Notes: generated by a model from the letters alone, not told the origin. DNA of 64,000 nt from IMGVR_UViG_3300036766_002181:62001-126000, one strand, 5' to 3'; positions 26,787-49,600 are shown, numbered from the stretch's first letter. Translations and numbers: made by a program.

Positions 26787-27455
26787 TCAAAGCCACAATC
26801 TGGTAAGATTTGCATAAGAAAAAGCTAAAAGCTTTTCTAATTCGGCCTTATCTAAGTTTCCCCTGGCCACATGATTAGAGGCCTTGGCCAGATTCCAAAG
26901 AATTTCTCTTTTTCTTGAATCTGAAATTCTTGAGGTTAGCCAGGTTAGGGCTACAAATCTTTCTCCCTTGACAATTGGCATAATTTGATGTTCTAAAAAA
27001 GATGAAAATACAACTGCCGTTCCTGCTGCTGGTTTAAAAGTAGAATTGACCGAGCCAAAATTAAAAACCATTTCGCCACCGTCATATTCTTCTGGCTCAC
27101 TAAGCAAAATAGAAACTGAAAGATCCCTTCTTTTTAACTTTCCTCTTATTCCCGAATCTACATGTAGGCCGTAATGATCCTTTGTTGCCGAATCATATCT
27201 TGATATAAAAGCTCTTTCTACTTCTTCTGGCCAGGCAATGCTAGAAAATGATGGAGTATTTCTTAATTTGTCCTCTACTAGATCTGATATTTTTTGGGGC
27301 GGCTTTAGCATCTGACTATTTTTCTTTTGACTCTTTGCTCCAAACCCGGCAGTTGTGGCACCCTCTGACCAGCTTTCTTTTGGCTCTAAACTTATGGCAT
27401 TTCTTACTTCTGAAACTTCGTTTTTTGTTAATAGGTCAATTAAAAATATAGACAT
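26787..27455 (-). CDS. PKHD-type 2OG-Fe(II) hydroxylase (PiuC/YbiX-like)
   Basis: TAG..AK..K.N, YGLHVD (HxD), RDLSVSILLSEPEEYDGGE, LEH, GERFVALTW. Confidence 0.9.
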   Translation of the reverse strand: MSIFLIDLLTKNEVSEVRNAISLEPKESWSEGATTAGFGAKSQKKNSQMLKPPQKISDLVEDKLRNTPSFSSIAWPEEVERAFISRYDSATKDHYGLHVDSGIRGKLKRRDLSVSILLSEPEEYDGGEMVFNFGSVNSTFKPAAGTAVVFSSFLEHQIMPIVKGERFVALTWLTSRISDSRKREILWNLAKASNHVARGNLDKAELEKLLAFSYANLTRLWL

Positions 27456-31789: not shown

Positions 31790-32212
31790 TTATTTCTGTT
31801 GCTTATATTTCTTAGTGTTATATTCTTTCCAATAGATCCAACCACCATTTTCTGTGTGGAAGCCCCATTCTCTTACCTTTGGTCCCATTAGACAGACTGT
31901 GAGGGTTCCAGGAGACACAGAAACAATTGTATGAGCAGTACCCGCACCAATCAGGTTCAACCACCTGTGGGTTTCCAGGCCCGCCATTCGTCTTTCTGTA
32001 TACTGTCCTCTAAGAATAAGAGACAAAAAGGATACAGGATGATCGTGAAGATAGGGCTCGGGATCAGGGTGATTAAGCCAGTGCAAACAAATGGCAAACC
32101 ATGGAGTCTTAAACAGGTGCAACCTGGTGATATAGTTTGTTGGAACAAAGGTCCAACGCCAAAAGCACCAATTGGTTCCTGACTTATATTCTCTGTTTTT
32201 AAACATATTCAA
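31790..32212 (-). CDS. Cupin-fold protein
   Basis: LHWLNHPD...LHDHP.SFLSLILRG.YTE...AHTI...GPKVREWGF (His/His/Glu/His metal ligands). Confidence 0.75.
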   Translation of the reverse strand: MNMFKNREYKSGTNWCFWRWTFVPTNYITRLHLFKTPWFAICLHWLNHPDPEPYLHDHPVSFLSLILRGQYTERRMAGLETHRWLNLIGAGTAHTIVSVSPGTLTVCLMGPKVREWGFHTENGGWIYWKEYNTKKYKQQK

Positions 32213-32796: not shown

Positions 32797-33043
32797 GTCT
32801 GGTTGGCTTGGCGTCTCCCGGAAACAGGTATTCTACTTCGCCATAGGCACTGATCTGTGTATCAGATTTTTTATAAAGCCTTCCTGGAATTTGTTTGTCT
32901 AGTTTAGAAGACTGAAGAGAGCCATCTTCATTTATGAACTGAAGATAGTGAAGATAAAATTCTTTATAAAGTCCATTTGGTAGGCGGCGAAAAACCCGCT
33001 CAATGGAGGTATTCATTCTTGTTGCACTTCTGCCCGTAATCAT
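32747..33043 (-). CDS. Hypothetical protein
   Basis: 98-aa ORF containing IPGRLYK, a possible distant PGxLY member. Confidence 0.45.
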   Translation of the reverse strand: MITGRSATRMNTSIERVFRRLPNGLYKEFYLHYLQFINEDGSLQSSKLDKQIPGRLYKKSDTQISAYGEVEYLFPGDAKPTRLVALGYDIEDTRYGRF

Positions 33044-33066
33044 ATTAAAAGTCTTTCTTTATTTGC

Positions 33067-33633
33067 TCAGTTGCTATCCACAAAAATATTCACGGTAAGA
33101 TCATAAAGCTCTTCGTTGGCAATAGGCTGTCTGCCAACAAAGGTTCTTAGGGAATGGGCTGTACTATTAAGTACATAATAGCCGTCACTAACTCTATGAA
33201 CTCCAAGTGGAAACAGGCCCTTAAGGCTAGTTAAAAGCGCCAGTCTGGTATCCTCTGCCCTGTTCCAGGTAGCAAAGTTTCCCCAAAGAAAACTTGCCTG
33301 CTGAAGTCTTTGTCCATTGGCTTGAAACCAAAAGTAAATCTGGCCCGGCTTTGTTGGCTCCTGGGAATAAAAGCTTGTTTTTTTGACCATCCCACCATTG
33401 CCATAGTTGCAGTTTCTTAAAATTTGGTCATCTTCATATACCTTCCAGGTGCCGCCCTGTTTTAAGCAGGTCTGTTCAACCTCTTCGACGGTTGTTTTTC
33501 CTACCTGGTAACCGGCGAATTTAACATATTCAGAATATGCTCTCTTGTTGTTTTGATCATTGGCAGAAACGCTACTTGCCGCCAGAAGTGCCAGGGATAA
33601 AATTATTGATATTGCCGATACGGTTTTGATCAT
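33067..33633 (-). CDS. Exported protein with signal peptide
   Basis: MIKTVSAISIILSLALLAASSVSA signal peptide; AAAGGA SD upstream. Confidence 0.7.
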   Translation of the reverse strand: MIKTVSAISIILSLALLAASSVSANDQNNKRAYSEYVKFAGYQVGKTTVEEVEQTCLKQGGTWKVYEDDQILRNCNYGNGGMVKKTSFYSQEPTKPGQIYFWFQANGQRLQQASFLWGNFATWNRAEDTRLALLTSLKGLFPLGVHRVSDGYYVLNSTAHSLRTFVGRQPIANEELYDLTVNIFVDSN

Positions 33634-33841
33634 ATTGTTTCCTTTGAATTAAAGAATTGTTGCTATAATTTATTATAAAGCCATTGTTGTTGGTTTTATA
33701 ACAATTATTGCACTTTGCTCACCAATGCATAAAGAATTATTTATATTCGTTTTAAGGGCAGCATAGATCTGCCTGTAGTCGGACCCGTCCAGCATTGATG
33801 GAGTGTCTTAAAATGGCTTCTAGGGGCTCTGGCGACAGAAT

Positions 33842-34600
33842 TTAACTCTTAGCGCCAGCTCTATTAATTTGGCAGAGAATTTCTTGTTTAACAAATTCTC
33901 TTATTAACCTATTTTTTGTTGCTCTTTGCCTTTGTTCCTCTTTAAGATCTTCCAATGGAATATCGGTTATTGTATTTCCCATAAGATCGATTATCTTAAA
34001 GTTGCCTCTCTTGTCTTTTAAGACATTTCTCTGGTGTATGTCGATTAACTCAACCCCAATCTTATTGAGATATTTGGCCGTATTATAACACATTACCAGC
34101 ATTGGAAGATCATTCCTGGAAAAAATATGATGATTGTCTTTTCTTACTCTATAAATCACATCCTTAAGATTTAATAAATGGCCCTCAAAAAAAGTTTGAT
34201 CAGAAACCCTTTCAAAAAAGGCAAACTCTTCCTTGGATAGGGGATATAGCCTTTCTTGAATAATGACATAAAGTTCCAACTCCCAGGTATCATGTTCGTC
34301 TCTTGGCTTGGGATTCTGTACAGTAATCCTTGGAAGTTTATAAACACCATAAATGTTTGATATGTGTTTAAGCTTCTTTCCTTTAAGTCTGGCACTGACT
34401 CTGGCTTCAGACCTGTCTGTTGTAAGCTTAACCACATGACCAGATTTTGTAAGATATGCCTCTCCAAAGGCTCCCTTGCCAAGTTGCTGCAAATCAAATT
34501 TAGAGGTCGGGGTTAGACCAAGTTTGTTTGCCAGACTTGGGTGATGCTCAATTAGGGCATCCTTAAAAAATGTTTCTTTTTCAAACGTGCTCATTGACAA
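33842..34600 (-). CDS. Ser/Thr protein kinase-like protein
   Basis: LGKGAFGEAY, VVKLT, IIQERL, DIHQRN catalytic loop, IIDL. Confidence 0.88.
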   Translation of the reverse strand: MSMSTFEKETFFKDALIEHHPSLANKLGLTPTSKFDLQQLGKGAFGEAYLTKSGHVVKLTTDRSEARVSARLKGKKLKHISNIYGVYKLPRITVQNPKPRDEHDTWELELYVIIQERLYPLSKEEFAFFERVSDQTFFEGHLLNLKDVIYRVRKDNHHIFSRNDLPMLVMCYNTAKYLNKIGVELIDIHQRNVLKDKRGNFKIIDLMGNTITDIPLEDLKEEQRQRATKNRLIREFVKQEILCQINRAGAKS

Positions 34601-34607
34601 ATTATAA

Positions 34608-36008
34608 TTATTTCTTTTTATTGCTGCTGGCGAGCTTAATGTTTCTTATGGCTCCCCTTGCCAGCTTGTCTTGGGTTGGTACTGTTTCGTCGTCAAAGGT
34701 TTGTGAATTAACATTAGATCTAACCCAAATATAGGCCATTTGATCAAGTTTAATATCTCCTATAGAAATAACCTCTTTTTGATATCCATATTCATCAGCA
34801 ATTTCTGATTTGCCAAGAATGTCTGGATTTAATAAGAAGTCATTTCCTCCACCATGAATTTTGGCCCTCATTACAACGAAAAACTTATTTCCCTTGCTAT
34901 ACAGCAACGTTCCCCAATCCTCTTTTATTTTCTTAATAATGGCAGGATTGACTGTCCAGGAAAAGTGATCTCTGGATTGATGGCCTGCAAAAAAATTTCC
35001 ACCTACTTGGGATCTCCATTTTCCATCCTTTTCTTTTTGTCCGTCAATTGCCTTTTTATTGCCACCCAACATTTGTTGAAGAATTTTTGGATCTACCTCC
35101 ATAAATCTATAGGCATACTGATATCTTTGAGGAACCTCTAAAACTTTTTCATATTTTCCTGCATTCTTAAGTTGATCTAGTTTTTTAATCCAAGGATTTA
35201 ATGCTGATGGACTACCGTGGTAATGAACATTCATGGCATTTTTTAAATCTATTTCTTTTCTGGTATTTGGTTCTTTTGGCTTTGGCGTATCTTTTCTTTC
35301 TGGTGCAAATAAATATTGGCCAAAGACTTCATCCTTAGATGCTTCTGGCGCTTCTGATAATAACAATGTTAACTTTATAAGTTCTTCCCTGATCAGGTCT
35401 ACTAATAGCTGCTCATTTTTTATTTTTGGTATTTTTGATTTTTTTGATGAAAAGCCACGAAGATCAATTATTTTTATATTTCCATCTTTATCTTTAAGAA
35501 CATTTTCGCCGTGAACATCTGATAGATAAATTCCCATTTTTAGTAGGTCATTTGACAGTTCTAGACACATGTTTAATAATGGCAAGTCTTCTTTTACAAA
35601 GCCATCGTCTCCTTCCTCATTTTGTTTTGCTACTTCAATTTCATTTTCCAGACCATTGGTAGTAAGCGTTCCCTCAAAAACTTCATGCAGCTTCCAGAAG
35701 AACTCTTGTTCGTGGGCCGACAAGGGATACAATCTTTCTTGTATGATTGCAAACCAATCCTTCATATAGGGAATCTCTGGCAATCTATATACTTCCAAAA
35801 TATTTGCTATATGCTTTATTTTTTTTCCCTTAAGTCTTGCACTAACCGCAACCTCTTTAGTATCTGTTGTAAGCTTAAGAACGTGACCTGATTCTAACTG
35901 GTAGGCATAACCCCAGGCCCCGCCTCCAAGCTCAAGAGAATGCTCTGTTAGACCAAGCTTCTTGGCAACCTTTGGATAAGATTCAATCAGGTCTTCTTTG
36001 AGAGTCAT
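34608..36008 (-). CDS. Protein kinase fused to an R-S-E clade ADP-ribosyltransferase-like domain
   Basis: Kinase: LGGGAWGYAY, VLKLT, DVHGEN, IIDL. C-terminal domain: YAYRFM, FSWT, YQKEVI. Confidence 0.78.
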   Translation of the reverse strand: MTLKEDLIESYPKVAKKLGLTEHSLELGGGAWGYAYQLESGHVLKLTTDTKEVAVSARLKGKKIKHIANILEVYRLPEIPYMKDWFAIIQERLYPLSAHEQEFFWKLHEVFEGTLTTNGLENEIEVAKQNEEGDDGFVKEDLPLLNMCLELSNDLLKMGIYLSDVHGENVLKDKDGNIKIIDLRGFSSKKSKIPKIKNEQLLVDLIREELIKLTLLLSEAPEASKDEVFGQYLFAPERKDTPKPKEPNTRKEIDLKNAMNVHYHGSPSALNPWIKKLDQLKNAGKYEKVLEVPQRYQYAYRFMEVDPKILQQMLGGNKKAIDGQKEKDGKWRSQVGGNFFAGHQSRDHFSWTVNPAIIKKIKEDWGTLLYSKGNKFFVVMRAKIHGGGNDFLLNPDILGKSEIADEYGYQKEVISIGDIKLDQMAYIWVRSNVNSQTFDDETVPTQDKLARGAIRNIKLASSNKKK

Positions 36009-36018
36009 TGGCCAACCC

Positions 36019-36909
36019 TCAAAATAGGTTCTTTACAAAGTCAAGAACTCTTTCAAAGAAGCCGGCTTTCTTTTTCTTTTTTGATGGCAATGGCTTGCCC
36101 GATTCAGAGTCAACAGTTGTCCATACCTCTGATTGCAATCCCCAATCCTCATAGGGAAAATAGGTGTAACCATTATCGGCATATCTTTTGCCCCAAGAGT
36201 TTCTAACAATAAATCCTCCCTTGTCTTTTAGATACCCAACAATGCAAGTTGCATGGTAGCCGAGAAGAGCCTGCTTGTCATTTGCCTGTTTCCACATTCT
36301 TGGTCCATAGTTGTACACGGGAATTGTAAGCAGACAGGGACCATTTTTTACAAGAGCCTTCTTTAGGGCATCTATGCTCTTAACAACAGCATAACCCTGA
36401 ACCCTATATTCTGATGCCTCTTTTTTAAGGGCCTCTGTAATTGGTAGGGTTGTAAGATAGGGATAGTCTTTTTCTGGAACAGAGCCTACCTTTGTTAGGA
36501 TTCTCATCACATCTCTTGGATACATTCCCTCACCCTTTGTAGATCTACTATTATAGATAAACTGGGGGCTCATATAGTCCAAGAAATGAACATCCCTTCT
36601 TTCCTGCCATTCCTTCATTGCGGCAGAGGACATTCCAAAGCAACAACCTTGCTTTCCCTGATCTCTTATGGGAAGAAGCTCTGGTCTATAATCAAGATTG
36701 TCTGGAAGGTCATTTAGATTAATGGCCTGATAAATTGTTTCTGCCTCGTGATCTCTTGGATCGTGTGGACTCCTTTGTACTCTATCCAAACGAACATCCA
36801 GTGCCTCTGTTACCTTTCCACCAGAAGGAGGGGAAACAACAGTAGCAGGATAGATGGTCGTGATTGTTGATGATGGTGATGATTTTTTTGATTTTGATTT
36901 TTTGGCCAT
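36019..36909 (-). CDS. Papain-like (C1) cysteine peptidase
   Basis: LPDNLDYR, IRDQGKQGCC (Q, C), SPQFIY, YHATCIVGY (H), VRNSWG (N). Confidence 0.92.
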   Translation of the reverse strand: MAKKSKSKKSSPSSTITTIYPATVVSPPSGGKVTEALDVRLDRVQRSPHDPRDHEAETIYQAINLNDLPDNLDYRPELLPIRDQGKQGCCFGMSSAAMKEWQERRDVHFLDYMSPQFIYNSRSTKGEGMYPRDVMRILTKVGSVPEKDYPYLTTLPITEALKKEASEYRVQGYAVVKSIDALKKALVKNGPCLLTIPVYNYGPRMWKQANDKQALLGYHATCIVGYLKDKGGFIVRNSWGKRYADNGYTYFPYEDWGLQSEVWTTVDSESGKPLPSKKKKKAGFFERVLDFVKNLF

Positions 36910-36921
36910 ATTGTGATATCC

Positions 36922-36929
36922 TTAAATAT
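36922..36929 (-). promoter_or_regulatory. Putative late promoter ATATTTAA upstream of the peptidase-kinase operon
   Basis: Same GCCATATTTAA context as upstream of the tail fibre gene (26727-26737); one of 11 (A/C)TA(T/C/G)TTA(A/T) sites before late genes. Confidence 0.55.
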
Positions 36930-36956
36930 GGCTTTTCCTATATAAAGCCAATGACT

Positions 36957-37439
36957 TTATTGAGCAATAAGAACTATATTTTCAAGAACTTCTTTTTGGG
37001 AATAGGTAACCCATCTTTTTCCATCAGGCCCCACAAAAACAAGACCATTAAGAAGGTGCCGTCTTTTGCATTCTTTTGCATTGTAACACTTGCCAACATA
37101 CATTAGAATTGTGCCGGTCATGAATATCCCAATATTCATTGTTAGATTGCCTCCTCCTATGTTTGATGCTCCGGTGTTGCAGATGGTTATGTTGTTGTGA
37201 ATATGGCTTGGGTTTCTTATGATCTGATCAACGTCTGTAGGGGGCCAGGAAGAAAATATCAATATTCCATCCAACAATGAAATGTTTGACGATGATGGGG
37301 CATATGGATTAACGATAACAAGAGGAGGATTGCGGGGCAGCCGGTTCTTGTATCTTTGTGATTCTATAAAGACTTCCTGGAATAAGTTCCTTATTCTTGT
37401 TGTTTTCTTTTCTTTTTTGTGACCGGCCTCATATAACAA
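36957..37439 (-). CDS. Hypothetical protein, possible extended PGxLY-family member
   Basis: TILMYVGK...FVGPDG motif shared with the neighbours. Confidence 0.5.
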   Translation of the reverse strand: MLYEAGHKKEKKTTRIRNLFQEVFIESQRYKNRLPRNPPLVIVNPYAPSSSNISLLDGILIFSSWPPTDVDQIIRNPSHIHNNITICNTGASNIGGGNLTMNIGIFMTGTILMYVGKCYNAKECKRRHLLNGLVFVGPDGKRWVTYSQKEVLENIVLIAQ

Positions 37440-37441
37440 TA

Positions 37442-37748
37442 TTAGGTTATTTTAATCAAAAAGTCTTTTTCAATATCAGATTCATGTGTTCCATAGGATC
37501 TCTTTGTTCCAAAGTCATAAAATGTTTTATATGAAAACGGTTCTTCAATAGTCTTATCAGCGGGGCCTTCACCAAGATACATCAAGAGAGTGGCTGCTCC
37601 CTCATGGGTTGGCAGGGTAAAGTAACGAGAACCATTTACTATCAATACCGCCTTCATCTTTTCTGTTTTCTCTTATAAAGAATTCACAAACATGCCAGGC
37701 CACGGGCTTGGTCTTTATTCTTAATCGATATAAGTCTCCTGGGATCAT
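37442..37748 (-). pseudogene. Frameshifted PGxLY-family gene (ORF1 37602-37748, ORF2 37442-37657)
   Basis: ORF1 MIPGDLYR...EGGIDS and ORF2 TLLMYLG...FYD...GTHE together align with the intact neighbour 37745-38080. Confidence 0.6.
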
Positions 37749-38080
37749 ATTAATTTCTTAAAAAACAAAGATATAAAATTATCTTCATGTGTTCCAATCC
37801 ACTGGCTTGCTTGTGGTTCATAAAACAATATACCATCTGGAACTTCTTCTGAATGGCCCATATACATCAGGGTTGTGCCGGCCTTTACGGTATAGCCCTC
37901 TAGATCTGCACGACAATCTATAAACCCTCCTTCAGAAGCGCATATATCTTCCAGACTTGCATCTGACTTAAATCGCCAAAAAGAATAATACCTTGTTTTT
38001 CTTCTTCCCTTTAAAGAAAATAAATCGCCTTCCTTTAAAAATAAAACAGATTTTTTATTTACTTTTTTCTTTTTTATCAT
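37745..38080 (-). CDS. PGxLY-family protein
   Basis: KEGDLF...EGGFID...TLMYMG...FYE...GTHE. Confidence 0.6.
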   Translation of the reverse strand: MIKKKKVNKKSVLFLKEGDLFSLKGRRKTRYYSFWRFKSDASLEDICASEGGFIDCRADLEGYTVKAGTTLMYMGHSEEVPDGILFYEPQASQWIGTHEDNFISLFFKKLI

Positions 38081-38081
38081 A

Positions 38082-38999
38082 TTAAAAATTTAAACTCTTA
38101 TGCTTTTTCTTATGACAATCATGACAAAGAACAATACCAGAAACCTTGTTTGTCAAATGATAATCCGTAACCGCCTTAATAATTTCTTGTTTTAATTGAA
38201 AGGTTTCTATGCTGTATGGCGTGGCAACAGCATAGTGATCAGCCCAACCCAATCGCCTTGCCTCGGATATAACAATAGAAGACATAGATTCTTGATTGTG
38301 ATGGACGTTTAATTTTGGATTTTTATTGCCATTGTTATAAAAATCTTTTCCACATTCCTGACAGGCAAATCTCGCCGCTTCCAAGAAGGGGCGCTTCCAT
38401 TCCTTATAAAGCCTTTTGCTGCTGCTACACATTGTGTGCAACGGAGCAATTCCTCCCTTCCATTGAGAATGCTCTGGTCCGCTTTTTCCCTTAAAAGTTC
38501 CATCTTTCCAATACTTCTTTGCCCTTTCACTTAACCTGGGATCTGCCGATCTGTTTTCGGCCATCTTCTTAATACTTTTATTGGTTTCCTTGGTCTTGCC
38601 CTGTGCCCAATGTTGTCCGGTTTCTTTTTCAAAGAATGGGTGAAAGGTTCCATCCTCAATCATTTTCTTTCGAGTCTCAAGGGACTTTTCTCTTGCCTTC
38701 TGATTGTGACCCCAATTGTTGTTCACACGAGCAGCATGACCACGAATATATTCTCGAAATCCTTCTCGAATTCCAAGAAACTTGGTTTTTTCTCCACAGC
38801 CACAGGCACATCTTGGTTCCGAGCCATTCAATAAGATATAAAGTTCTTTCGATGGTTTTTTGTGGCCTTTTCGAAAGTGAACCGACAAGGAAAGCAAAGA
38901 GGGAAAAAGGGCTGTGCAAAGCGGGCATACATGAGGTTTAATTTCCTCCTCTTCCTCCTCCTCTTTTGATGCTACAATTGCTGCTGTTTTGTTTTCCAT
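38082..38999 (-). CDS. HNH endonuclease with zinc finger and NUMOD-like segments (free-standing homing endonuclease)
   Basis: CPLC...H...H, CACGCG, KSGPEHSQWKGG, CQECG...LNVHH...LCHDCHKKKH. Confidence 0.8.
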   Translation of the reverse strand: MENKTAAIVASKEEEEEEEIKPHVCPLCTALFPSLLSLSVHFRKGHKKPSKELYILLNGSEPRCACGCGEKTKFLGIREGFREYIRGHAARVNNNWGHNQKAREKSLETRKKMIEDGTFHPFFEKETGQHWAQGKTKETNKSIKKMAENRSADPRLSERAKKYWKDGTFKGKSGPEHSQWKGGIAPLHTMCSSSKRLYKEWKRPFLEAARFACQECGKDFYNNGNKNPKLNVHHNQESMSSIVISEARRLGWADHYAVATPYSIETFQLKQEIIKAVTDYHLTNKVSGIVLCHDCHKKKHKSLNF

Positions 39000-39183: not shown

Positions 39184-39675
39184 CTAGTATTGTGCCACGG
39201 CGTTATCAAATCTCAAAGTTAATGTGATCTCCATCAGGTCAGTTGCAGAGTCATAGGCAAGATCTCCGAACTTGGCCTCTGTAATAAAGGCACCCTTGAT
39301 ATCCCAAAGTTGGACCACTGTTCCAACTGGATCTAACATCTTGATCTGTACGTCTCTCTTGTAAAAGTCAGCATAACCGGCTCTGCCTGAAACTGATTCA
39401 AAACAAAGACGAATCCATTCCATGACCTGCTGGGCTCCTGAAGGGGCAATAGGATCATGAAGGACTACGGCAAGAGTATCAAAGGTGGTTTTTCCGGCAA
39501 CATATCTGGTTGAGTTAATCCAGGGAATAGGAATTTCCTCTGTTTTATAACCAGGGCGAGCAGCAGACTTAACAATAAAAGAATCAATGCCTTCTATGGC
39601 AAAAACGAATCTTCGCTTTGCCAGTGGTTCAAACTTGTTTGGCAACAGGGCAGAGCTATCTAGCGTGATCGTCAT
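39184..39675 (-). CDS. Tail tube protein (T4 gp19-like)
   Basis: RRFVFAIEG, ARPGYKTEEI, YVAGKTTF, QVMEW, YKRD..I.MLDPVG..V..W...GAF, LTLRFD. Confidence 0.9.
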   Translation of the reverse strand: MTITLDSSALLPNKFEPLAKRRFVFAIEGIDSFIVKSAARPGYKTEEIPIPWINSTRYVAGKTTFDTLAVVLHDPIAPSGAQQVMEWIRLCFESVSGRAGYADFYKRDVQIKMLDPVGTVVQLWDIKGAFITEAKFGDLAYDSATDLMEITLTLRFDNAVAQY

Positions 39676-39749: not shown

Positions 39750-40847
39750 ATGATATTTGTTCAAAAAGAAGCTGCTGGTGACTCTGGCATGATAGAAAAA
39801 TCTGGAATTTATCAAATTAAAAATATCATAAACAATAAGTTATATATCGGTTCTGCTAGAAACTTCAGAATAAGATTTAATGACCATATTCATAAACTTA
39901 AAAGGAATAGGCATCCAAATAAATATCTTCAAAACGTTTATAATCAAAACCCAAAAAGCTTGGCTTTTACCATAATAGAAATTGTTGAAAACTGGCAACT
40001 TAATCTTCTTATAAAGGAACAAGAATATTTGAATGTCTTCCACGACAAACAGCAGACCTGTTATAACATGTGTCCTACGGCTGGCTCGGCTTTTGGAAGA
40101 AGACACTCAGAAGAAACCAAGAAAAAGATGTCACGATCTGCTATTGGACAACCGTGTTCTATAGAAACCAGGGCCAAAATGTCTGAGATAAGCAAAAAAA
40201 GAATTAAAGATCACTTTAAATCTGGCAAAGAAAATCCAATGTTTGGAAAAACCGGGAGCAAACACCATTTTTATGGAAAGCACCAAAGCTCAGAATCAAT
40301 TCTTAAAAGAAAAGAAACCATAGCAAAAAGAGACAAACCAATTGCCTATCATGCCAGACAAATTGCCCAATATGATATGGAGGGAAATTTAATTCAGATT
40401 TTTAAATCCGTATCAGAAGCAGAAAGACAATTGAAAAACAAAGGCATCAGTAGTTGCATGTATAGAAAAGCACAAACTTCTGCTGGTTTTGTCTGGAGAG
40501 ATCCGCTAGAGGATGGTTCTTTTCCGTCAAAAATTGATGCAATTACAAAAAAGCCCACTGGCTTTTTTGGCAGACATTCACAAGAGACAATAGAGAAAAT
40601 AAGAAAAAATCATCCAAGCAAAAGATCAGTACAACAATTTGACAAACTCAATCAAGCCATATCTCTTGAAACATATTCCAGTCTAAAGGAAGCCAGCAGA
40701 AAAACTGGAATAGTCTATTCTACAATTTGTGCCTGCTGTAAAGGCAAAAGACCATCTGCCGGCGGATTCATATGGAAATATCTTTTAGAAAAAGAACCGC
40801 CAGCAGATAATCAATATCCACCATCATCATCTTCTGGCTTGTTATAA
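39750..40847 (+). mobile_element. Free-standing GIY-YIG homing endonuclease with NUMOD3/NUMOD1 repeats, opposite to the structural operon
   Basis: SGIYQIKNIINNKLYIGSA, HSEETKKKMS, GKENPMFGK, IAQYDMEGNLI..F.S..EA; likely start at 39789. Confidence 0.9.
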
Positions 40848-40951: not shown

Positions 40952-42385
40952 TTATTTTCCTATTTTAAGCAAAAGTCTCTTTCCAAGTCTTTTTGCTCTT
41001 TCATCGATATCCTCGCCTGACTTATTCCATTCTTCTGGATCAAAGTCCTTATAATAGGCCTCAACTATATTTTCTACAGACATATAGGCGTTATAGGTAA
41101 GTTCTCCTACTGGAAGAACATTAAGAAGGGCCATAATGGTCTGTTGACTGAGAAGATCCTTTTCTTTTCCATTCTTTTCTATGCCGGCCAAAGAAAAGGC
41201 ATACTTCAGGGCAAGTCTATCTTTCTTAGAAAGAGCCATCTCTGCTTCAAGATTTGAAAGAAGTCTTAAACTCTTTTTTCTGTAGCCCTCTGGATTTCCG
41301 AGAAAGTTATCTGCATTATTGTCCTCTTCTGTGTCATCGTCGTCATCATTTTTCTTCATAAAAGGAAGAACCGTACCTTCTTGTTTCATGGTATGGGCAT
41401 CTGCCTTGTAGGGCATTTTAACAGCACCAGAAAATGTTGGATTCTTTGATTTCTTTACAATTCTATCATTGGCCTCAAAGGTTACCTGGGCAATGGCATA
41501 AATCTTTTCAAGAATCTTTGTTCTGATTTTCTTTGATAATGTTTTTATCATGGTTTGAAGTTTTGGTGCAATTCTATAATCTGGGCTTCGATTCATAAGA
41601 ACCTTATGGAGAGCCCAGTTGCTATCATAAATTTTCATAAATTCTTCCCTTGAGGGAAATCCTTTTCTTCCCTTTCCATGAAAAATAAAGGCATCAAGAA
41701 TTTCTTGCAATAAAACAACCTTTATTGCCTCCATTAATCTATCTGTAAGCTCTGCATTTCCAATAACAAGGGCCCGTCTTTCTGGATCCTCTATATATTG
41801 ATCCTCGCAGAAGATTGCATCCTTAAGAACCTTGTCGGTATCAAGATCCCTGTCTTCTTCTTCCTTGTCATCATCATTGGATTCTTTTTTAAGAGGCTCT
41901 TTTTCTTGATCTAGAATTTCTGGATTGTGGTAATGATCGGGCTCATATTCCTCTTTATCATCATAGGGATTATAACGTTTTTTCTTCTTTGCGCCGCCAT
42001 ATCCCCAGCCAAAATCATCGTCGCCATCATCTAAAGAGGTTCTTTTGTTATTAAAATGACCCGGATAACCCCTTGCTTCCTCTACCTCTGTTTTTTCCTT
42101 TGCATCCAAAGAAGTTTTTTTATTATCAAAATGATGATAGCCCCTTGTTGTCCTATCCTTTAATGAAGCATGAAGTTCAATTTCTTTTTGCAGGTCAAAG
42201 TTTGCCTTTAAAAGAGTTTCGTTGGCAAGCTCTACAACCCTATTGTGCGAAACCTCTGCTGCCGTAAAGATGTAGTCGTTAAGGTTTTCTAAATACTTTA
42301 TAAGATAGTTCTTTGCAAGCTCACGACTTTCTCTGGCAGCCTCTTGCATCCAGGGCTTCTGTCTTCTTGGAGGGCGATTGTTCAT
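40952..42385 (-). CDS. Hypothetical acidic/basic protein in the structural operon
   Basis: 477-aa ORF; internal duplicated RGY(P/H)..F.NK(K/R)TSLD. Confidence 0.65.
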   Translation of the reverse strand: MNNRPPRRQKPWMQEAARESRELAKNYLIKYLENLNDYIFTAAEVSHNRVVELANETLLKANFDLQKEIELHASLKDRTTRGYHHFDNKKTSLDAKEKTEVEEARGYPGHFNNKRTSLDDGDDDFGWGYGGAKKKKRYNPYDDKEEYEPDHYHNPEILDQEKEPLKKESNDDDKEEEDRDLDTDKVLKDAIFCEDQYIEDPERRALVIGNAELTDRLMEAIKVVLLQEILDAFIFHGKGRKGFPSREEFMKIYDSNWALHKVLMNRSPDYRIAPKLQTMIKTLSKKIRTKILEKIYAIAQVTFEANDRIVKKSKNPTFSGAVKMPYKADAHTMKQEGTVLPFMKKNDDDDDTEEDNNADNFLGNPEGYRKKSLRLLSNLEAEMALSKKDRLALKYAFSLAGIEKNGKEKDLLSQQTIMALLNVLPVGELTYNAYMSVENIVEAYYKDFDPEEWNKSGEDIDERAKRLGKRLLLKIGK

Positions 42386-43620
42386 TATGGCGCCTGTAGA
42401 TCTACGTCGGGCGGGCCATAGGAATCTGCTATGTCCTGCTGCATTTCATTCCAGGCATCAACTGCCTGTTCCTTGGTTACTTCATCTACAAATTCATTAC
42501 GATTAGAGCTATCAGGGGCTCCGTCATAACAGTTGCCACAACTAATTGTATATCCCCAATAGGATCCATCATAAAGCGTTGGCAAATCTCCACAATCATG
42601 GCATGGAAGAACACCTGGAAGATCCTTGCCTTCTACTTTTCCGCCAGCAAGATCTCTAGGGCCCTCTTCCAAAGCGGGTCTTCTTCCAAATTTATTTGAA
42701 CTTTTATGTCTTCTTTTTTGTTCGTCATAGTCAAAAATAGAACCCAGATCAAAATCATCCTCGCCACAATTTGGACACTTTATGTTTCTCTCATCATCTC
42801 CTATACCAAATCGAGAACCGCAACCATTGCAGCGTATGCGCACCTTTCTAACATCTTCCTTCAGACCTTCTTCTAAAACATCAATATCTGTGCCATGACA
42901 CTTCGGACAGGTAGGATTCATTGAATTTGTACTAAACTTTCTGCCGCATTCCATACATTCAACCCTTACTTTGTGATTATCTTTTCGGGGCTTCTCGGCA
43001 TGTTCGCCTACCGTACCAACAAGAGATCTTTTTGCCACGTTGTTCCTTTTTTCCGTATGCCATGGTTCATAGGCAGAGGGTATTTCCATCCAGGTTGATC
43101 CATCATGGGCACTTGCAAATACTTGGGCAATTTTCTTTTGGATTGGAAACTCATCCAAGACTTTTCTAACCTCTTTGCTATCCTTAACATAGAGATCAGA
43201 TTCAAAATGATGCATTGTCGCATCAATTCCTAAAAGCTCCTGATAAAGACTAGAATGTCCCATTTCTTCATTAACGGGGGCCGGTCTATAGAGGGGTTCT
43301 AATTTGTTTCTTAGCCATTCATAGGGATCGCCTGATCTTGCCTTCTGGATTTCATGGGGCATTTCATCACTATAATAATCAGTTAATACAGACACTAGCT
43401 CTTGAGAAAGGTTGTCTGTTTCTCCTTTAACAAAGGCTTCGAGTTCCTGATCCTCTACAGGATCAAGATCCAATCTTACCTCTTGCTTTTTTACGTAGGG
43501 CCGGAAGCCAAGTTTTTGTGCAACTTTCCTACCAAAAGAAGATTCTTTTAATACAATAGAAGAAACAATTTCTTTCAAATGCCTCTCTGTGAGTTTTGTC
43601 TTAATTGCCATGATTGCCAT
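42385..43620 (-). CDS. Multidomain zinc-ribbon protein with C-terminal Lar-like domain; putative internal head protein
   Basis: CMECG..CPKC, CNGCG..CPNC, and PCHDCG...ISCGNC...EQAVDAWNE; KLTE, LKE and LEE linkers. Confidence 0.65.
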   Translation of the reverse strand: MAIMAIKTKLTERHLKEIVSSIVLKESSFGRKVAQKLGFRPYVKKQEVRLDLDPVEDQELEAFVKGETDNLSQELVSVLTDYYSDEMPHEIQKARSGDPYEWLRNKLEPLYRPAPVNEEMGHSSLYQELLGIDATMHHFESDLYVKDSKEVRKVLDEFPIQKKIAQVFASAHDGSTWMEIPSAYEPWHTEKRNNVAKRSLVGTVGEHAEKPRKDNHKVRVECMECGRKFSTNSMNPTCPKCHGTDIDVLEEGLKEDVRKVRIRCNGCGSRFGIGDDERNIKCPNCGEDDFDLGSIFDYDEQKRRHKSSNKFGRRPALEEGPRDLAGGKVEGKDLPGVLPCHDCGDLPTLYDGSYWGYTISCGNCYDGAPDSSNRNEFVDEVTKEQAVDAWNEMQQDIADSYGPPDVDLQAP

Positions 43621-43645: not shown

Positions 43646-46624
43646 TTACACTTGGTTTGTAACCACAAAGTCAATGCTCACCGTTTCAAGCGTCTTGCTA
43701 GGCGTAATAAATATGGATCCTCTTATAATCCTGTTTTCTAAGTCTGCCTGAGTGGTCGTTGTTGTATCGATCTTAACCAAGAATCTTTCAACTCCCTTTT
43801 GATCCTGTATGGCCTTTAAAATTGGGGTTGTAAGCTGGGCAAATCTTGCAAGGGTTTCTTCACGACCCTGCTCAAAGAGCATTCTATAACCAACGGCCTT
43901 AACCTTGCGTCTAATGTCAATTAGAAGCCTTCGAACGTTAACTCTATCAAGAGAGCTTTCAGTTTGAAGAAGTGTCTTTTGTCCCCAAACCACAACTCCT
44001 TCTGAACCTGCAAAAGAAACAAGTGGATTAATGTTTGCATCCTGAAGAGTGTCCATGTTTTCTTTAGACAGTCTAACGGCTGCCGATTCTACTGTGTCTA
44101 GAGAGCCTCTGGTAAATCCAGCAGGAGCAAACCATGGATGGGCTACTGCATCATTCTTTGCAAAGGCACCAAGAACGGCGACTGAGGGTGGCACCACTCT
44201 GGTTCTTCCTGTAAAACTATCTCTAAGAACAACATCTGGGAAATAGGCAGCACCAAAAGAGCTGTTAATTCCACGGGCTGTATGTTGGTTGGAGGTGTTC
44301 TTAACGCTCAAAATCTGATTACTTGAAGAAATTGGCAAATTCTGAATATCATACTGTGGAACATCCATAATAAAGACAGAATCAAATCTGTTTTCATTAA
44401 CAAGAAGCGCCCTATCAGTGATTACTGTATGGCGAATTCCTGGAACTGCCATCATTTGAATGTCAATTTCTGTAACATCCTCAAAGATATCCAATGCCTT
44501 ATTAAAAGCAGCAACCGTTGGTCCGTCAGTAAGGCCACGATCTGCATAGGTCATTTCTTCTGTCACGGCCAAGTCTGTCATGTTGACGGCATCTCTGTCG
44601 AAAACATTTGTTCCATCAAATCCGCCATGCAAGAAGAAGGAGAACTTGGCAACATTGCGTGTTGCGGCATCAGTCAAATCATTTACAGAAAGGGCTCTAG
44701 TGTCGCTGTCCACTGTAACATTACCATCTCTTACATAAATCCACTCATCCATTTTTTGTGTATTTGGTTTATCAAAGGCATTAATTGCAATTTGTATATT
44801 TCCCAGGGAGAACTTATTATGATTAAATCTATCAGCATCAAGAATGCCATTCTCGGCAGAATCGGCAACTCCCTGGTTATTGCTTAAGACCATATTCATA
44901 AAGTCTGTATGGAAATTTGGATAATACTTGTTAAACGACAGGATGTTGGTATCCTGGGCCGTGCTTAGGTTTGGCTCTGCAACGCTGGTCTTTTCTTCAA
45001 ATTGAATGCCCCAATAAAGAGCCTTATCAACAACTCTATTTGGCGTTGAGCCTCTGGTAATTCTTTCTCTAAGAGGAACAGGCAATTGAACAATATTAAA
45101 GAAGGGATCAGAAACAGAAAGATAATCACCATCATCAAAACTGTTAAATGGAGCCGACCCAGAAGTTACAAGGTGTGGAACCCCACGGAAACCAAATGGA
45201 ACTGCGGCAGGAGAAAGTTCGCCATCAGAAACCTTGTTGGCCATTTCAACTCTCATATATCTTGAATTGTTTTCAAAATTGCCTTCGGTAATAAGCTTTT
45301 GTGAGCCAATTGCTGCATCAAAATTAAAGAAGGTTTTTGTATCTCCAACAATTCGAGCAACATATTGCGGAGAATCAGGATTTAGACTTAATCCTCTCCA
45401 TGCCTCAACTGCAACAGGAGCCTTGTCATTGTCGTTAAAATCTCTTACAAGGAGATCAAACTTGCCATAAGGCTCTGCATCTGTGCCTGGGATAATATTC
45501 TCAATTGAGAACTTAAGTCTAGAGTTTGGTTCCTTGCCATCTGAAAGGGCAGAAATCTTAAACAGATTTTCTTCCTGGCCACCAAATTTCTGTGAAACCA
45601 CATAAACAGATTCGGCAGTACGATATCTGTCTTCAAAATTTTCAAAACTTGGGATCGTGGTTGAGCCCGAGTTTCTAGTTGGCGAAGCTGACGTTAATAG
45701 GAAAACAACGTCTTCAGTTTCGAGTGCTCCCGAGACTGCGCCTACACCAAAATCCTCTAAAACAACACCTGAGCCTGTTGGCGTGGCTAGGGCTGGGTGA
45801 ATTTTATAATCAGCATATAGGAGGTGGCCTGCCTGCTCGACCTTATAAGGATCTGTATTAAGCACCTTGGTAAGATAGTTTGGTGCCGTTGGGTCAAAGG
45901 AGGCTGTAATAACATTTGGAAAGGCTGGATCAGGATTGCTGTGTCCATTTAGAAGCACAACAAATTCTTGACGCCCGTTGGCTATGTTTAGAGAGCCTGT
46001 AAGGCTCCCTGAAGCCGTTGAAGAAGTGCCTGTGGCATCTGGTGCATTGTCTGCCACTCTGCTGCTAGAGAGGGTTGCATACACTCCTGAAGCTGCAAAA
46101 ACAATACCACGAACAACCGGAACTCCTTCTATTGGTAGGCCAGCATCGGAAAAAATTGTTGAGGAACCTGTTTGCTTCATATAGCAACCAAGGACAAAGG
46201 TTCTGCCTTCATCTCCTTCGCCAGGAACGGTTACATATTGATTATCATCAAGACCACCACCAGGAGCCTGTGGAAGAACCGCACCGACAACAAAGCCGCC
46301 AAAAACAACACGGCCAGAGTTGTCACCAGCATCTTCTCTTGCCTTGCCTGAACCGGCACCAAGAACCCTAAGAAAGGTTAATGCCTGTGAATTTCTTAGC
46401 CATTCGATGGCTGCCATGGGAGCAGCAGCCTGATCATCTGTCGATGTACCAAAATCTACCACGAAGTCTGAATCCGTTGGAAGGGTTACAGGAACGAAGG
46501 CTGGTCCCTTTTGAGAAGTGCCTATAACTCCAGCCGGAATACCGGCAGGACGAATTGAAGTTGGACCAGTTCTATTGATTACCCTTGTCGTAACTCCTGC
46601 GCTCTTGTATGTTATTTGTGACAT
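43646..46624 (-). CDS. Tail sheath protein (copy 1)
   Basis: GVIGTSQKGPAFVP, LRVLG, GGFDG, AVPGI, YFPDV, PPSVA, PWFAPAG..RG, INP, WGQKTL, RVNVRRL. Confidence 0.95.
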   Translation of the reverse strand: MSQITYKSAGVTTRVINRTGPTSIRPAGIPAGVIGTSQKGPAFVPVTLPTDSDFVVDFGTSTDDQAAAPMAAIEWLRNSQALTFLRVLGAGSGKAREDAGDNSGRVVFGGFVVGAVLPQAPGGGLDDNQYVTVPGEGDEGRTFVLGCYMKQTGSSTIFSDAGLPIEGVPVVRGIVFAASGVYATLSSSRVADNAPDATGTSSTASGSLTGSLNIANGRQEFVVLLNGHSNPDPAFPNVITASFDPTAPNYLTKVLNTDPYKVEQAGHLLYADYKIHPALATPTGSGVVLEDFGVGAVSGALETEDVVFLLTSASPTRNSGSTTIPSFENFEDRYRTAESVYVVSQKFGGQEENLFKISALSDGKEPNSRLKFSIENIIPGTDAEPYGKFDLLVRDFNDNDKAPVAVEAWRGLSLNPDSPQYVARIVGDTKTFFNFDAAIGSQKLITEGNFENNSRYMRVEMANKVSDGELSPAAVPFGFRGVPHLVTSGSAPFNSFDDGDYLSVSDPFFNIVQLPVPLRERITRGSTPNRVVDKALYWGIQFEEKTSVAEPNLSTAQDTNILSFNKYYPNFHTDFMNMVLSNNQGVADSAENGILDADRFNHNKFSLGNIQIAINAFDKPNTQKMDEWIYVRDGNVTVDSDTRALSVNDLTDAATRNVAKFSFFLHGGFDGTNVFDRDAVNMTDLAVTEEMTYADRGLTDGPTVAAFNKALDIFEDVTEIDIQMMAVPGIRHTVITDRALLVNENRFDSVFIMDVPQYDIQNLPISSSNQILSVKNTSNQHTARGINSSFGAAYFPDVVLRDSFTGRTRVVPPSVAVLGAFAKNDAVAHPWFAPAGFTRGSLDTVESAAVRLSKENMDTLQDANINPLVSFAGSEGVVVWGQKTLLQTESSLDRVNVRRLLIDIRRKVKAVGYRMLFEQGREETLARFAQLTTPILKAIQDQKGVERFLVKIDTTTTTQADLENRIIRGSIFITPSKTLETVSIDFVVTNQV

Positions 46625-46676: not shown

Positions 46677-49600
46677 TTATACGAAACTGGTCCCGGACCT
46701 AGTTATGACAAAATTCATATCAATAAATTCTACTGATCTAACCGGCTTTAAAACAATTCGACAATTGATTTTATGAGCATTGATATCTGCATCAGAATTG
46801 TTCGAACTATCGCAGATAATCTTAAAAGTCTGGATTCCTTGTCTAATTTGAACGCTTGTCATTACTGAATTAATTTGATTTTTTAATTGATCCCTCAAGT
46901 CAGGAGTAATGTTTTCCCAAATTAGGCGATTTCCAATATCGATAACCTGGCGCTTAAGATCATTAAGCATTCTTACAACGTTTACGCTACCAAGAGCAGA
47001 CTCTTGCTGCTCTAAAGTATTTTGTGAAAATATGACATAACCTTCTCTTGGGAATTTAACAATTGGGTTGATATGAGCCGAGAAAAGTCTATTTCTTTCT
47101 GGCTGGGTGATTCTCGTGGTTGTTCTTTTAACAAAATCAAGAGCAGCTCTGTTAAACCCTGCGGGTGCAAACCAGGGATAGGCAACCCTATCGTTGAAGG
47201 CAAGAGCAGATACGGCTGCCACAGAAGCAGGAGCGGTTACTCTTCTTCCATTTGCCTCGTCGTCCATAACAATTTCTGGGAAATAAGAAGCCACGAATTC
47301 ATTATCAATTGCCCTGCCTTCAAGGGCATTTGCAGTTTTCTGTGGATCTGGAAAAATTCCAGTTTCTCCATCAAAAACTCTTTCGCCTGCGGCGTTATAG
47401 TTTGGAACATCCATTACATATAATGCCAGACCATAATCTCTAACCTTGTCGGCATAAAAATCGGTTACAAGTGGATCTCTCTGTCCCGGCACAGCAACCA
47501 CATTAACATTAGATGCCATTGCATCTGTAATAATCTTGGCCGATTCTCTATATGAGGCAACCGTATTATTGGCTATTCCTACTCCGTTTTGATTAAAATC
47601 AAATCCGGGAGAAATAAATGAGCCGTTAACATTTCCTAGAGTACCATCTGTTCTGTCTTCTGTTGAAGAGGCTCTATCGTCATAGGTGGCAGCATGCTTG
47701 TCAAGAATGTTTGCCCCATCAAACCCGCCTTGAAGAACCAGAGTAAATTTAGCAAATTGTGAAAATGCATTAAAGGTAGCAGCAGTTGCTCCCTTGTTAA
47801 CAAGAGTGGCAAAGGTAATCCTGTTGGTTGCATCGTCTGCATCTGTAATCATATAGTTTGTTACGTCAGGAATACCGTTTCTTATATAGGCAGCTTCCTT
47901 AATGTGCGCTTCAGCAGAAGAGGTTAAATCATTTAAACTGGTATTACCAAATGCAACCTTGGCCAGGGTAAACTTGTGATTGTGGAATCTATCCTGATTC
48001 ATAGAACTCGTTACGACAGCATCAAGCTCAGAAATTCCATTAAATTGAGTGTAGGCTGCAATAAGAGCATTTGGCTCTGTTACAGGATTTGGGTTTAGAA
48101 CATCCTTAATTCTTTCTAGTTTAACGCCCCAGAAGAATCTTCCGTCAACAATTTCAAAGTTGCCAGGAGCACCTTCTAGCTTACCAGCCTCTGTGGATAC
48201 TGCTCCACGGGTAATCTTAAATCTAAATGGAATTGGTGGTACAACGGCGGCCAACAACTCTGCATCTGCACCCGAAGTGCCAAGATTTGCATGCAATCTT
48301 TTGATATCTGCGAAATCAGCAAGAGAGCCAGATCGATCAAGCAATCTAGAGTTTGTGCTTAAAACTTCATAGCCTCTAAAGCCAAATGGAAGCGATTCGG
48401 CTGGAATCAATTTGCGCTCGACTTCATCTGAGGCAACAACCCGAACAACCTTTGATATGTTTGCATATCGGCCAGAAACGATAAGTCTACGGTCCTGCTC
48501 GTCTTCTGCATCAAAGTTATAAAAGGCTTTTCTGTCGCCAATCTTATGACAAATATAGTTTTCTGATTCAGGATCAAGATTCACATTATTAAATTGTTCA
48601 AGTATACTAATGTTCGTATCTGTATCCTCAAAGTCTCTTACAAGAACCGTAAATGTGCCAAACTTATATCTTGGATTTGAGGACTTCTTAATATCAGAGA
48701 TAGAAATCTTAAATTTCTTATTTGGAAAAGCCCCATCATCACGGGCTTCGAAATGGAAAAGATTGTGCTCGGTAATGCCAAAGGGCTGAGAAATAATTGA
48801 AGGAGTCTTTGCCTGTTTATATCTTGTATCAAATCTTCCAAAGGCATTTAAGAAAGGAAGACCCGTATCTCCTGAAAGATCGCTGGTCTGTGCAGAGCCA
48901 GAAGCAATAACAACATCTCCGCTGCTTGTTCCTACGCTTGCAACGGCGTCATCTACGGCGAAGTTTGCATAAACAACGTGCTTATATGTGCTAAATTGTT
49001 CTGGATCGGTGTTAAGTACCTTGGCAAAATAATCATCATTTGAAGGATCAAGAGAGGCGGTTACAATTCTAATTCCAGGATTTCCTTCATCGGCGGCAAA
49101 GCTTGCACCCAAGGAACAAGAAATAACAATCTTAAACTTTTTGGTTGTACTGTTTGCGGTCGCAGCATCATCTGCACCAATGGCCCAGGATTCATCATGA
49201 TCAAGAACCTGAATTCTTGTATCATTGGCCGTAAAGATAACGCCTCTTACAAGACGAGCATCTGAGCCAGAAAGACTGGTATTATGTGAAAATCCTGCCT
49301 GTCCAAAAGATTCACTCACTGAAATCTCGTGTCTTGCCACAAGAAACTGAACGGCACCATGAATTGGCTCTGAAGCCAAGGAGGCACTAACCTTAAAGCC
49401 GGCATTTACAACCGTTCCCTGTGTTCTTGTTGTTTCTATATCATCGGCGGTTGTGTTGCCACCAGCCCCCAAAACACGCACGAAAGTAAGGGCAGACCTA
49501 CTGTTGAGATGTTCGATTACAGCATAGGGAGCAGCAAATCTTGGGTTTAAATTGCCAAATCTTGTTTTAAAATCAGGAAAGGAACCAACCGTAACCGGAA

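Follow-up and report, generated by a model that had tools for sequence, protein, structure and literature searches.

Phages use injected or early enzymes, such as T4 Alt/Mod and the T7 kinase, to reprogram their hosts and to disarm host defences. In the polyvalent proteins of phages, the kinases keep their active site and lose the C-terminal subdomain, and the peptidase domains have been proposed to process or release the effector domains (Iyer et al. 2017, PMC5512222). The T7 kinase is a broad anti-defence enzyme, a single phage kinase being able to neutralise many defence systems (PMC13645617), and the ADP-ribosyltransferases (ARTs) of myoviruses are often encoded near morphogenesis genes and packaged (PMC9503650). 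Here we describe a three-gene cassette from the viral record IMGVR_UViG_3300036766_002181 (244,715 bp), of which bases 62,001-126,000, a stretch of 64,000 nucleotides referred to as the window, were analysed. The cassette encodes a papain-family (C1) cysteine peptidase, a fusion of a kinase with an ART-like domain, and a stand-alone kinase (Table 1). We see in it a pared-down polyvalent effector distributed over separate genes and unusual in three respects: its truncated kinase is fused to a member of an unannotated family with the probable ART fold, a duplicate of the kinase stands alone, and the peptidase is of the papain family, a class that had not been listed for such systems. That its products covalently modify or cut proteins and together form a host takeover module is a reading to which we give about even weight.

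The three genes lie on the minus strand, at 36019-36909, 34608-36008 and 33842-34594/34600. A preliminary description of this DNA had listed them as co-directional, with gaps of 10 and 7 nt, and this layout holds. The stop codon of the peptidase gene (36019-36021) is separated by 10 nt from the ATG of the kinase-ART gene at 36008, and the kinase-ART stop codon (34608-34610) lies 7 nt from a TTG at 34600 or 13 nt from an ATG at 34594. The ATG is the more likely start of the third gene, and the gene call in the database also begins there, giving 250 aa. Two minus-strand terminator-like sites were detected in the region 33000-38000, both upstream of the cassette and none internal to it, and the compact co-directional layout fits a single transcription unit. 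No other intergenic gap nearby is as long as the spacer that follows the third gene, and this spacer likely marks the end of that unit; it folds no better than shuffled sequences (z-score -1.6, not significant), and no Rfam families were found in the window. The hairpin that precedes the peptidase gene is a possible weak terminator for the upstream genes; it has no T-run and was not flagged by the terminator scan. The sequence TGGCTTTATA occurs three times genome-wide, and two of these copies, at 36941-36950 and 33683-33692 (minus), lie 41-50 nt upstream of the first cassette gene and of the gene that follows the cassette, respectively; the copy at 36941-36950 is the 5' arm of the same hairpin, which abuts the element ATATTTAA discussed below.

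The first gene encodes a clear and complete papain-family C1 enzyme, predicted from its sequence to be cytoplasmic. It matches the Pfam family PF00112 (Peptidase_C1) with 65.6 bits against a cut-off of 20.7 (E 8.9e-18) over residues 68-251, and also phrog_16701 ('peptidase'). Among proteins of solved structure, a bacterial cysteine protease, 3ois_A (xylellain; E 1.5e-15), matches best; dozens of cathepsins and plant papains come after it, and 74 C1 chains of the PDB match at E <= 1e-3. Residues Q84, C90, H219 and N237 align with the equivalents of Q19/C25/H159/N175 in cathepsin K, so that the complete Q-C-H-N set noted in the preliminary description is indeed present. The catalytic core (~68-255) is preceded by a Lys/Ser/Pro-rich N-terminal extension (~1-65) and followed by a linker rich in Lys and, at the C-terminus, an amphipathic helix (GFFERVLDFVKNLF). 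Neither a signal peptide, nor a transmembrane (TM) segment, nor an I29-type propeptide was found, and residues 1-67 gave no other Pfam match; a secretion signal and an I29 propeptide are typical of C1A zymogens and are not a strict requirement of the family.

Homologues of the peptidase with 28-33% identity are found in the Prevotella Lak megaphages, in LR756511 (a 595-kb uncultured phage), in the Burkholderia jumbo phage FLC9 and in the Thermoanaerobacterium phage THSA-485A; no relatives were found in the viral contigs. The closest homologue (49% identity) is encoded at L026:63-869, on the metagenome contig Ga0209536_100907328, which at 1.09 kb is too short for a proper synteny test. It ends in a TM helix, where the window peptidase has its amphipathic helix, and is followed by a small, nearly all-TM open reading frame (ORF) and no kinase. 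This homologue hints at a subgroup of membrane-anchored phage papain-like peptidases.

The two kinases are close paralogues, as had been described: BLASTP aligns them over 236 aa at 44% identity (E 6e-49), the identity in the MAFFT alignment is 49%, and the peptides quoted in support of their kinship are present. The fusion kinase features the G-loop GGGAWGYAY, K45, E52, a catalytic D164-x4-N169 and D182-L-R-G; the stand-alone kinase carries K56, E63, D185, N190 and D203 (numbering of the 250-aa form), followed by a long C-terminal helix. Ten sequences were aligned: the two window domains, the six domain copies of two viral contigs, and two distant hits from database searches. All ten have the G-loop glycine G41, the catalytic D185, N190 and the metal-binding D203, and the β3 lysine K56 and the αC glutamate E63 are conserved in at least 90% of them. 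The AlphaFold2 (AF2) model of the 250-aa kinase has a pLDDT (predicted local distance difference test) of 80.1, and a Foldseek search with it against the PDB gave at least 500 matches at E <= 1e-3, all of them eukaryotic-type protein kinases with a probability of 1.0 and with CK2alpha and ERK2 at the top. Its neighbours in the ESM Atlas are viral kinase clusters, including Phage_T7_kinase and Kinase-PolyVal, and phrog_18305 ('kinase') is matched weakly, at E 9e-5. The polypeptide ends ~20-30 residues past the D-L-x-G motif, with a single helix after it in the model; the whole C-terminal lobe is therefore missing, leaving only the N-lobe and the catalytic core. Sequence and model thus support the two proteins as active-looking, truncated protein kinases that retain all catalytic residues.

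Word-indexed protein searches with the kinase returned only the kinase itself, and a two-sequence profile added only two distant hits. Its relatives in viral contigs are found as three tandem copies in each of two giant proteins, of 1731 aa (L008:19-5214) and 2255 aa (L011:5505-12272), which also carry a cytidylyltransferase-like (HxGH) domain. Behind each giant protein come, in this order, a small HExxH protein and a cysteine-containing protein of ~296-299 aa. The two giant proteins look like unannotated polyvalent effectors.

The C-terminal domain of the fusion probably belongs to a very divergent enzyme family with the R-S-E ART fold, as suggested by its predicted fold, its motifs and a protein language model. 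An exhaustive HMMER scan of 1.84 billion representatives yielded 266 clusters at E <= 1e-3, of which 81 also pass E <= 1e-10; they are mostly viral and mostly from large phages. This family is unannotated in the Pfam and PDB copies that were searched, and a description elsewhere in the literature is possible. Across an alignment of 75 diverse members (in the numbering of the 466-aa protein), five residues never vary, namely E246, E252, R301, W351 and E412; S350 is retained in at least 90%, and either Q or E occupies position 410. The key residues are R301, S350-W351-T352 and Q410-K411-E412, in the motifs ...AYR..., ...SWT... and ...[QE]xE..., whose order and spacing are those of the R-S-E triad of cholera-toxin-like ARTs. 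In the AF2 model of the domain (pLDDT 90.6; predicted template-modelling score, pTM, 0.88), R301 lies in model strand 86-93, S350-T352 in strand 136-140, which is followed by a helix, and E412 is the first residue of strand 200-204; R301, S350-T352 and E412 are hence modelled at the places expected for β1, β2 and the strand of the ADP-ribosylating turn-turn (ARTT) loop.

Structure searches with this model agree in kind, not in strength. Foldseek against the PDB gave E values of only 0.02-0.2, in a list dominated by pertussis S1, cholera A1, LT, Vis, TreX and Tre1. In a Foldseek-independent search of 48,161 PDB chains the top 45 were almost all of ART fold, among them C3stau2, Vis, Scabin, TreX, pertussis S1, LT, Certhrax, iota, DarT and Tpt1. 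In BFVD the matches are to phage proteins that have not been characterised (E 7e-5 at best), with Alt-type ARTs matching weakly. A comparison that does not use structure, by language-model features, points the same way, as the named neighbours in the ESM Atlas are ART families (DUF4765, DRAT, NarE, Lart1, ADPrib_exo_Tox and Scabin/Pertussis_S1). The label 'ART' of the preliminary description is thus probably right, on the grounds of predicted fold, triad and language-model neighbours and not of membership in a described ART family. A hot-dog thioesterase or START-like fold for the domain was considered and rejected (Foldseek probability <=0.08, TM-score ~0.1). A reading of the N-terminal arm of the domain as a cleavable targeting peptide was likewise rejected; since the arm is packed on the domain with a pLDDT above 95 and is repeated with each ART-like copy of the family member P0002, it is more likely part of the fold.

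The kinase-ART fusion was found in this genome only. About two thirds of the 151 listed representatives of the ART-like family, typically of 225-260 aa, lack any flanking region as long as 80 aa, and 47 of the 151 carry extra regions. The partners in listed members include HExxH domains (P0002, P0004, P0007), a transglutaminase-type core (P0019), NUDIX (P0038) and HicA. None of the other 150 listed members carries a kinase, which identifies the fusion as a local, derived event. A locus search with the closer set of ART-like sequences gave one high-GC contig, L003, with uninformative neighbours. The 665-aa P0002 consists of an HExxH domain and two tandem ART-like copies; its gene (L004:10001-11998) has a trypsin-like peptidase gene directly upstream (L004:9088-9942), and this region of a large phage contig also holds RNR, SNF2 helicase, PolyA_pol and Thy1 genes. 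A homology between the ART-fused HExxH domains and the small HExxH proteins beside the multi-kinase proteins was considered as well; the BLASTP match is marginal (E 0.014), and for this reason no such homology is claimed.

Three observations were counted in favour of a functional link between the peptidase and the two effectors. These are the 10-nt spacing between the peptidase and kinase-ART genes, the HExxH neighbours of the multi-kinase proteins, and the recurrent fusion or adjacency of the ART-like family to peptidase-type modules of differing catalytic classes (HExxH, transglutaminase core, trypsin-like). The pattern parallels the polyvalent proteins, for which peptidase domains are proposed to process effector domains or set them free (PMC5512222). 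The tail tube gene and two sheath genes that lie upstream on the same strand were in turn counted for the effector reading.

A further feature of the cassette is a real, genome-wide sequence element, [AC]TATTTA[AT], which marks its head and is absent from its second and third genes. The preliminary description had noted a motif before the peptidase gene that matches one before a gene for a tail fibre, and the match was confirmed: the 12-mer AGCCATATTTAA, which contains the 8-mer ATATTTAA, also lies upstream of the 704-aa gene starting at 26716. That gene has no PHROG or Pfam family match, and the label 'tail fibre' is an interpretation that finds no support. The bare 8-mer ATATTTAA occurs in the window at chance frequency (7 found, 7.5 expected), yet its placement is not random: each of its four minus-sense copies there stands 5-12 nt ahead of a minus-strand start. 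In the whole genome, 11 of 19 copies of ATATTTAA and all four copies of CCATATTTAA lie in sense, at most 60 nt upstream of genes. The top enriched 7-mers in non-coding upstream DNA are CTATTTA (15.7-fold) and ATATTTA (14.1-fold). In 11.1 kb of upstream spacers the consensus [AC]TATTTA[AT] was counted 25 times in sense, against 4.3 +/- 2.0 in shuffles (maximum 12) and 12 antisense copies; for 17 of the sense copies, 4-11 nt separate the end of the element from an ATG.

As regards its function, the element could be a promoter-like sequence of the -10 type with a very short leader or none, or a translation-initiation element. A promoter of the -10 type so near the ATG, possibly of a phage-specific class, would yield mRNAs with little or no leader. 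The terms 'promoter' and 'late' used for ATATTTAA in the preliminary description are an interpretation, and unproven. CTTGACA, which resembles a sigma70 -35 box, is enriched 5.9-fold upstream of 8 genes and may represent a separate host-polymerase-dependent (early?) promoter class.

A number of results weigh against the interpretation of the cassette as a host takeover module, and they have to be set beside the alternative explanations for its parts. Both relevant Pfam models stay below their cut-offs with the kinases, Pkinase (PF00069) at 11.7-11.9 bits against 31.7 and Kinase-PolyVal (PF18762) at 15.2-16 bits against 27, the latter over the catalytic loop only. It is conceivable that the two proteins are small-molecule phosphotransferases (APH-, ABC1- or choline-kinase-like) rather than protein kinases, given that their catalytic loop D-[VI]-H-x-x-N is a Brenner-type motif as in APH and that weak Pfam APH and ABC1 matches occur in kinase relatives. 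We regard this as very improbable, however, since all top structural neighbours are eukaryotic-type protein kinases, the Atlas neighbours include the T7 kinase and Kinase-PolyVal families, and the distant homologue P0153 carries a Pkinase match. For the ART-like domain, no sequence matches were found in Pfam or the PDB, even with the 75-sequence profile against the PDB; the Pfam ART models PF03496 and PF18760 found nothing in the genome; and hhalign against T4 ModA/ModB gave a probability of ~1%, in a comparison whose power is low because the templates are single sequences. The domain might have the ART fold and be no protein ADP-ribosyltransferase: a nucleic-acid modifier (as DarT, pierisin or Scabin), an enzyme with a phosphate acceptor (Tpt1/KptA-like), which would possibly be installed by the fused kinase, an NAD+ hydrolase, or a non-catalytic binder. 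This alternative is unlikely in our view. The domain's invariant Arg and Glu, together with its nearly invariant Ser-Trp-Thr, correspond to the cholera-toxin-like R-S-E arrangement, not to the H-Y-E type of KptA and DarT, and their invariance across 75 diverse members favours catalysis over a pseudo-enzyme.

The genomic neighbourhoods bear on the two remaining alternatives. No kinase or ART-like gene was found within 8 kb of the C1 homologues in Lak-B5, Lak-A2, LR756511 and FLC9, nor a C1 peptidase near any kinase or ART-like homologue; the homologue in THSA-485A follows a GH25 endolysin gene after 16 nt, and L026 is followed by its small TM ORF. Conservation of the gene order in relatives, which the preliminary description had named as one of the checks to be made, was not borne out, as no co-occurrence was seen around any homologue of the three genes. 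Because the gene order is not conserved and the closest peptidase homologue has no kinase gene beside it, the link between the peptidase and the effectors is one that we infer; that the peptidase processes the fusion is plausible but unsupported. The peptidase could instead have a function of its own, at the membrane in connection with the envelope or lysis, or in the cleavage of host proteins, and share no more than a transcription unit with the kinases. The TM helix of L026, the endolysin neighbour in THSA-485A, the bare surroundings of the other phage homologues and the fact that C1 is not among the four peptidase superfamilies of polyvalent proteins (PMC5512222) all speak for this. We take it as a serious rival, if a rather unlikely one: the window peptidase is devoid of a signal peptide or TM segment, no recognised endolysin or holin lies beside it, and the 10-nt spacing together with the family-wide association of ART-like and peptidase-type domains favours a functional link. 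As for timing, the ART-like homologues lie in nucleotide-metabolism or early-like regions, not structural ones, and the genes downstream of the cassette resemble auxiliary-metabolism, non-structural genes. The ATATTTAA element may not be a late promoter, and may act in translation initiation or mRNA stability or belong to another temporal class, in which case the cassette would be no 'late operon'. This is a substantial possibility, which we rate somewhat below even. It is favoured by the position of most copies 4-11 nt before the ATG, nearer than in the ordinary arrangement of -10 box, leader and Shine-Dalgarno sequence, by the presence of the element before a tRNA nucleotidyltransferase gene, by its absence from the tail tube and sheath-1 genes, and by those early-like surroundings of the ART-like homologues. 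On the other hand, the element precedes sheath-2, the adjacent 401-aa gene and the adaptor-like gene, as well as several very large ORFs, its restriction to the first gene of the cassette is expected of an operon-head mark, and the sigma70-like CTTGACA enriched upstream of other genes would fit an early class.

In the takeover reading, the kinases would phosphorylate host proteins during infection, possibly after delivery from the virion, and the ART domain would ADP-ribosylate host proteins using NAD+. Such dual modification would take over or disarm the cell, as do the T7 gp0.7 kinase and T4 Alt/ModA/ModB, with the peptidase as the processing enzyme of a split polyvalent-effector set or as a third effector acting on host proteins. 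A more far-reaching version can be imagined in which kinase and ART act in sequence on one host target, so that phosphorylation creates or gates the acceptor for ADP-ribosylation in a 'double lock', the peptidase releases or activates the two halves, and the ART-like domain founds a new and widespread viral ART family; this we consider a long shot. In a variant of it, the acceptor could be the phosphate itself, as with the Tpt1/KptA-type enzymes, which are among the best structural matches.

The source phage is most likely a very large myovirus, with the cassette as one compact unit at the edge of its tail-gene block. The cassette is placed at the edge rather than inside because the tail genes lie upstream of it and auxiliary-metabolism-like genes downstream. 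The completeness of the virus record is estimated by CheckV at 57%, and the only sequencing run that contains the cassette region is a DNA run of a sediment metagenome. The window has a G+C content of ~38% and is coding almost wholly on the minus strand. No close relative of the phage was found, the cassette DNA being without a match among 50,697 phage records, and a tblastn search of phages with the kinase and the ART-like domain gave no match.

Among the tail genes, the two sheath paralogues stand in tandem, and no match assigns a function to their long N-terminal extensions. The plus-strand homing endonuclease gene lies between the tail-tube gene and an unannotated 477-aa gene (40952-42385). 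A very weak Kinase-PolyVal match (E 0.094, 10 bits) at 51490-51576 is probably noise; it falls in the ORF 51055-52878, which encodes a 607-aa phrog_4301 protein and adjoins the sheath genes.

Table 1. Location of the cassette features and of neighbouring genes and elements in the window.
Feature	Position	Strand	Remarks
Papain-family (C1) cysteine peptidase	36019..36909	minus	296 aa; PF00112, phrog_16701, PDB 3ois_A
Kinase domain of the 466-aa fusion	35394..36008	minus	residues ~1-205; fold inferred from the model of the paralogue
ART-like C-terminal domain of the fusion	34608..35372	minus	residues 213-466 and stop codon
Stand-alone kinase	33842..34600	minus	250 aa (ATG 34594) or 252 aa (TTG 34600)
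ATATTTAA	36929-36922	minus	within the 12-mer AGCCATATTTAA (36933-36922); 12 nt before the peptidase ATG
Hairpin TGGCTTT-N8-AAAGCCA	36929..36950	minus	in the 47-nt spacer 5' of the peptidase gene; 3' end abuts ATATTTAA
Spacer after the cassette	33634..33841	minus	208 nt; short GGCAG/CTGCC hairpin and the second TGGCTTTATA
[AC]TATTTA[AT], examples in the window	23097, 26734, 29976, 36929, 49781, 51049, 56013, 58373		
Tail-tube gene	39184-39675	minus	upstream of the cassette
Tail sheath paralogue	43646-46624	minus	~1000 aa; phrog_23 match in the C-terminal third only
Tail sheath paralogue	46677-49727	minus	~1000 aa; phrog_23 match in the C-terminal third only
Adaptor-like gene		minus	upstream of the cassette
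Homing-endonuclease-like genes (HNH, GIY-YIG)	38082-38999, 39750-40847 (+), 42385-43620, 53560-54645		among the tail genes
Protein with signal-peptide-like N-terminus	33067-33633		next gene downstream of the cassette, start 33633
Cysteine-dioxygenase-like cupin gene	31790-32212		downstream of the cassette
2OG-Fe(II) oxygenase gene	26787-27455		downstream of the cassette
PhoH gene	17519-18700		downstream of the cassette
Alanine dehydrogenase/PNT-like gene	13653-14801		downstream of the cassette

The modification of host proteins is a known phage strategy, and what is new in this cassette is the combination. If the ART-like domain is active, the catalogue of viral NAD+-dependent effectors misses a sizeable family (~266 clusters), and the cassette would offer a natural dual-modification enzyme, together with a candidate dedicated protease, for studying the ways in which phages combine and process their effectors. 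Should the domain lack activity, or the genes have nothing to do with one another, the cassette would be one more set of uncharacterised accessory genes in a megaphage.

Comparison with known enzymes places each component of the cassette close to, and apart from, a described group. The peptidase shares the Pfam C1 domain and the Q-C-H-N tetrad with xylellain (3ois), cathepsin K and the C1 peptidases of the Lak and THSA-485A phages, but differs from these C1A peptidases in having no I29-type prodomain or signal peptide and in being extended by a Lys/Ser-rich stretch at the N-terminus and an amphipathic one at the C-terminus; each C1 homologue examined has other neighbouring genes. The kinases resemble T7 gp0.7 as phage enzymes of predicted protein-kinase fold with a non-canonical DFG motif and a presumed takeover or anti-defence role. 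The T7 kinase homologues have a non-canonical DPV motif (PMC13645617), which is different from the D-L-x-G of the cassette, also without Phe. There is no detectable homology to T7 gp0.7, and the cassette kinases have no shut-off (SO) or DNA-binding domain; the T7 kinase is moreover an early gene, whereas the cassette adjoins tail genes.

The predicted fold of the ART-like domain is probably the split β-sheet of T4 Alt/ModA/ModB and of C3, Vis, Scabin, pertussis S1 and LT, with their R-S-E placement, and, as in the case of T4 Alt/Mod, the domain is encoded by a large myovirus near morphogenesis genes. In contrast to T4 Alt/Mod and the R-S-E ARTs, it has no sequence-profile similarity to them (Pfam, PDB and hhalign being negative), it is fused to a kinase, and its activity is predicted. 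A conserved N-terminal arm of ~45 residues (FGxYLF..R.D...E.NT..E), which holds the two further invariant Glu residues E246 and E252, also sets it apart from the known R-S-E ARTs.

With regard to the polyvalent proteins, the cassette differs in being split into three genes, of which one unites two domains, in the small size of the window proteins, in kinases that fall below the PF18762 cut-off of Kinase-PolyVal, and in a papain-family C1 peptidase outside the four superfamilies described for them. It is like them in that its kinases keep all residues for ATP binding and phosphotransfer and have lost the C-terminal subdomain, in that a kinase is combined with an ART-type domain and a peptidase, and in that relatives of the cassette kinase stand in tandem in giant viral multidomain proteins beside HExxH proteins.

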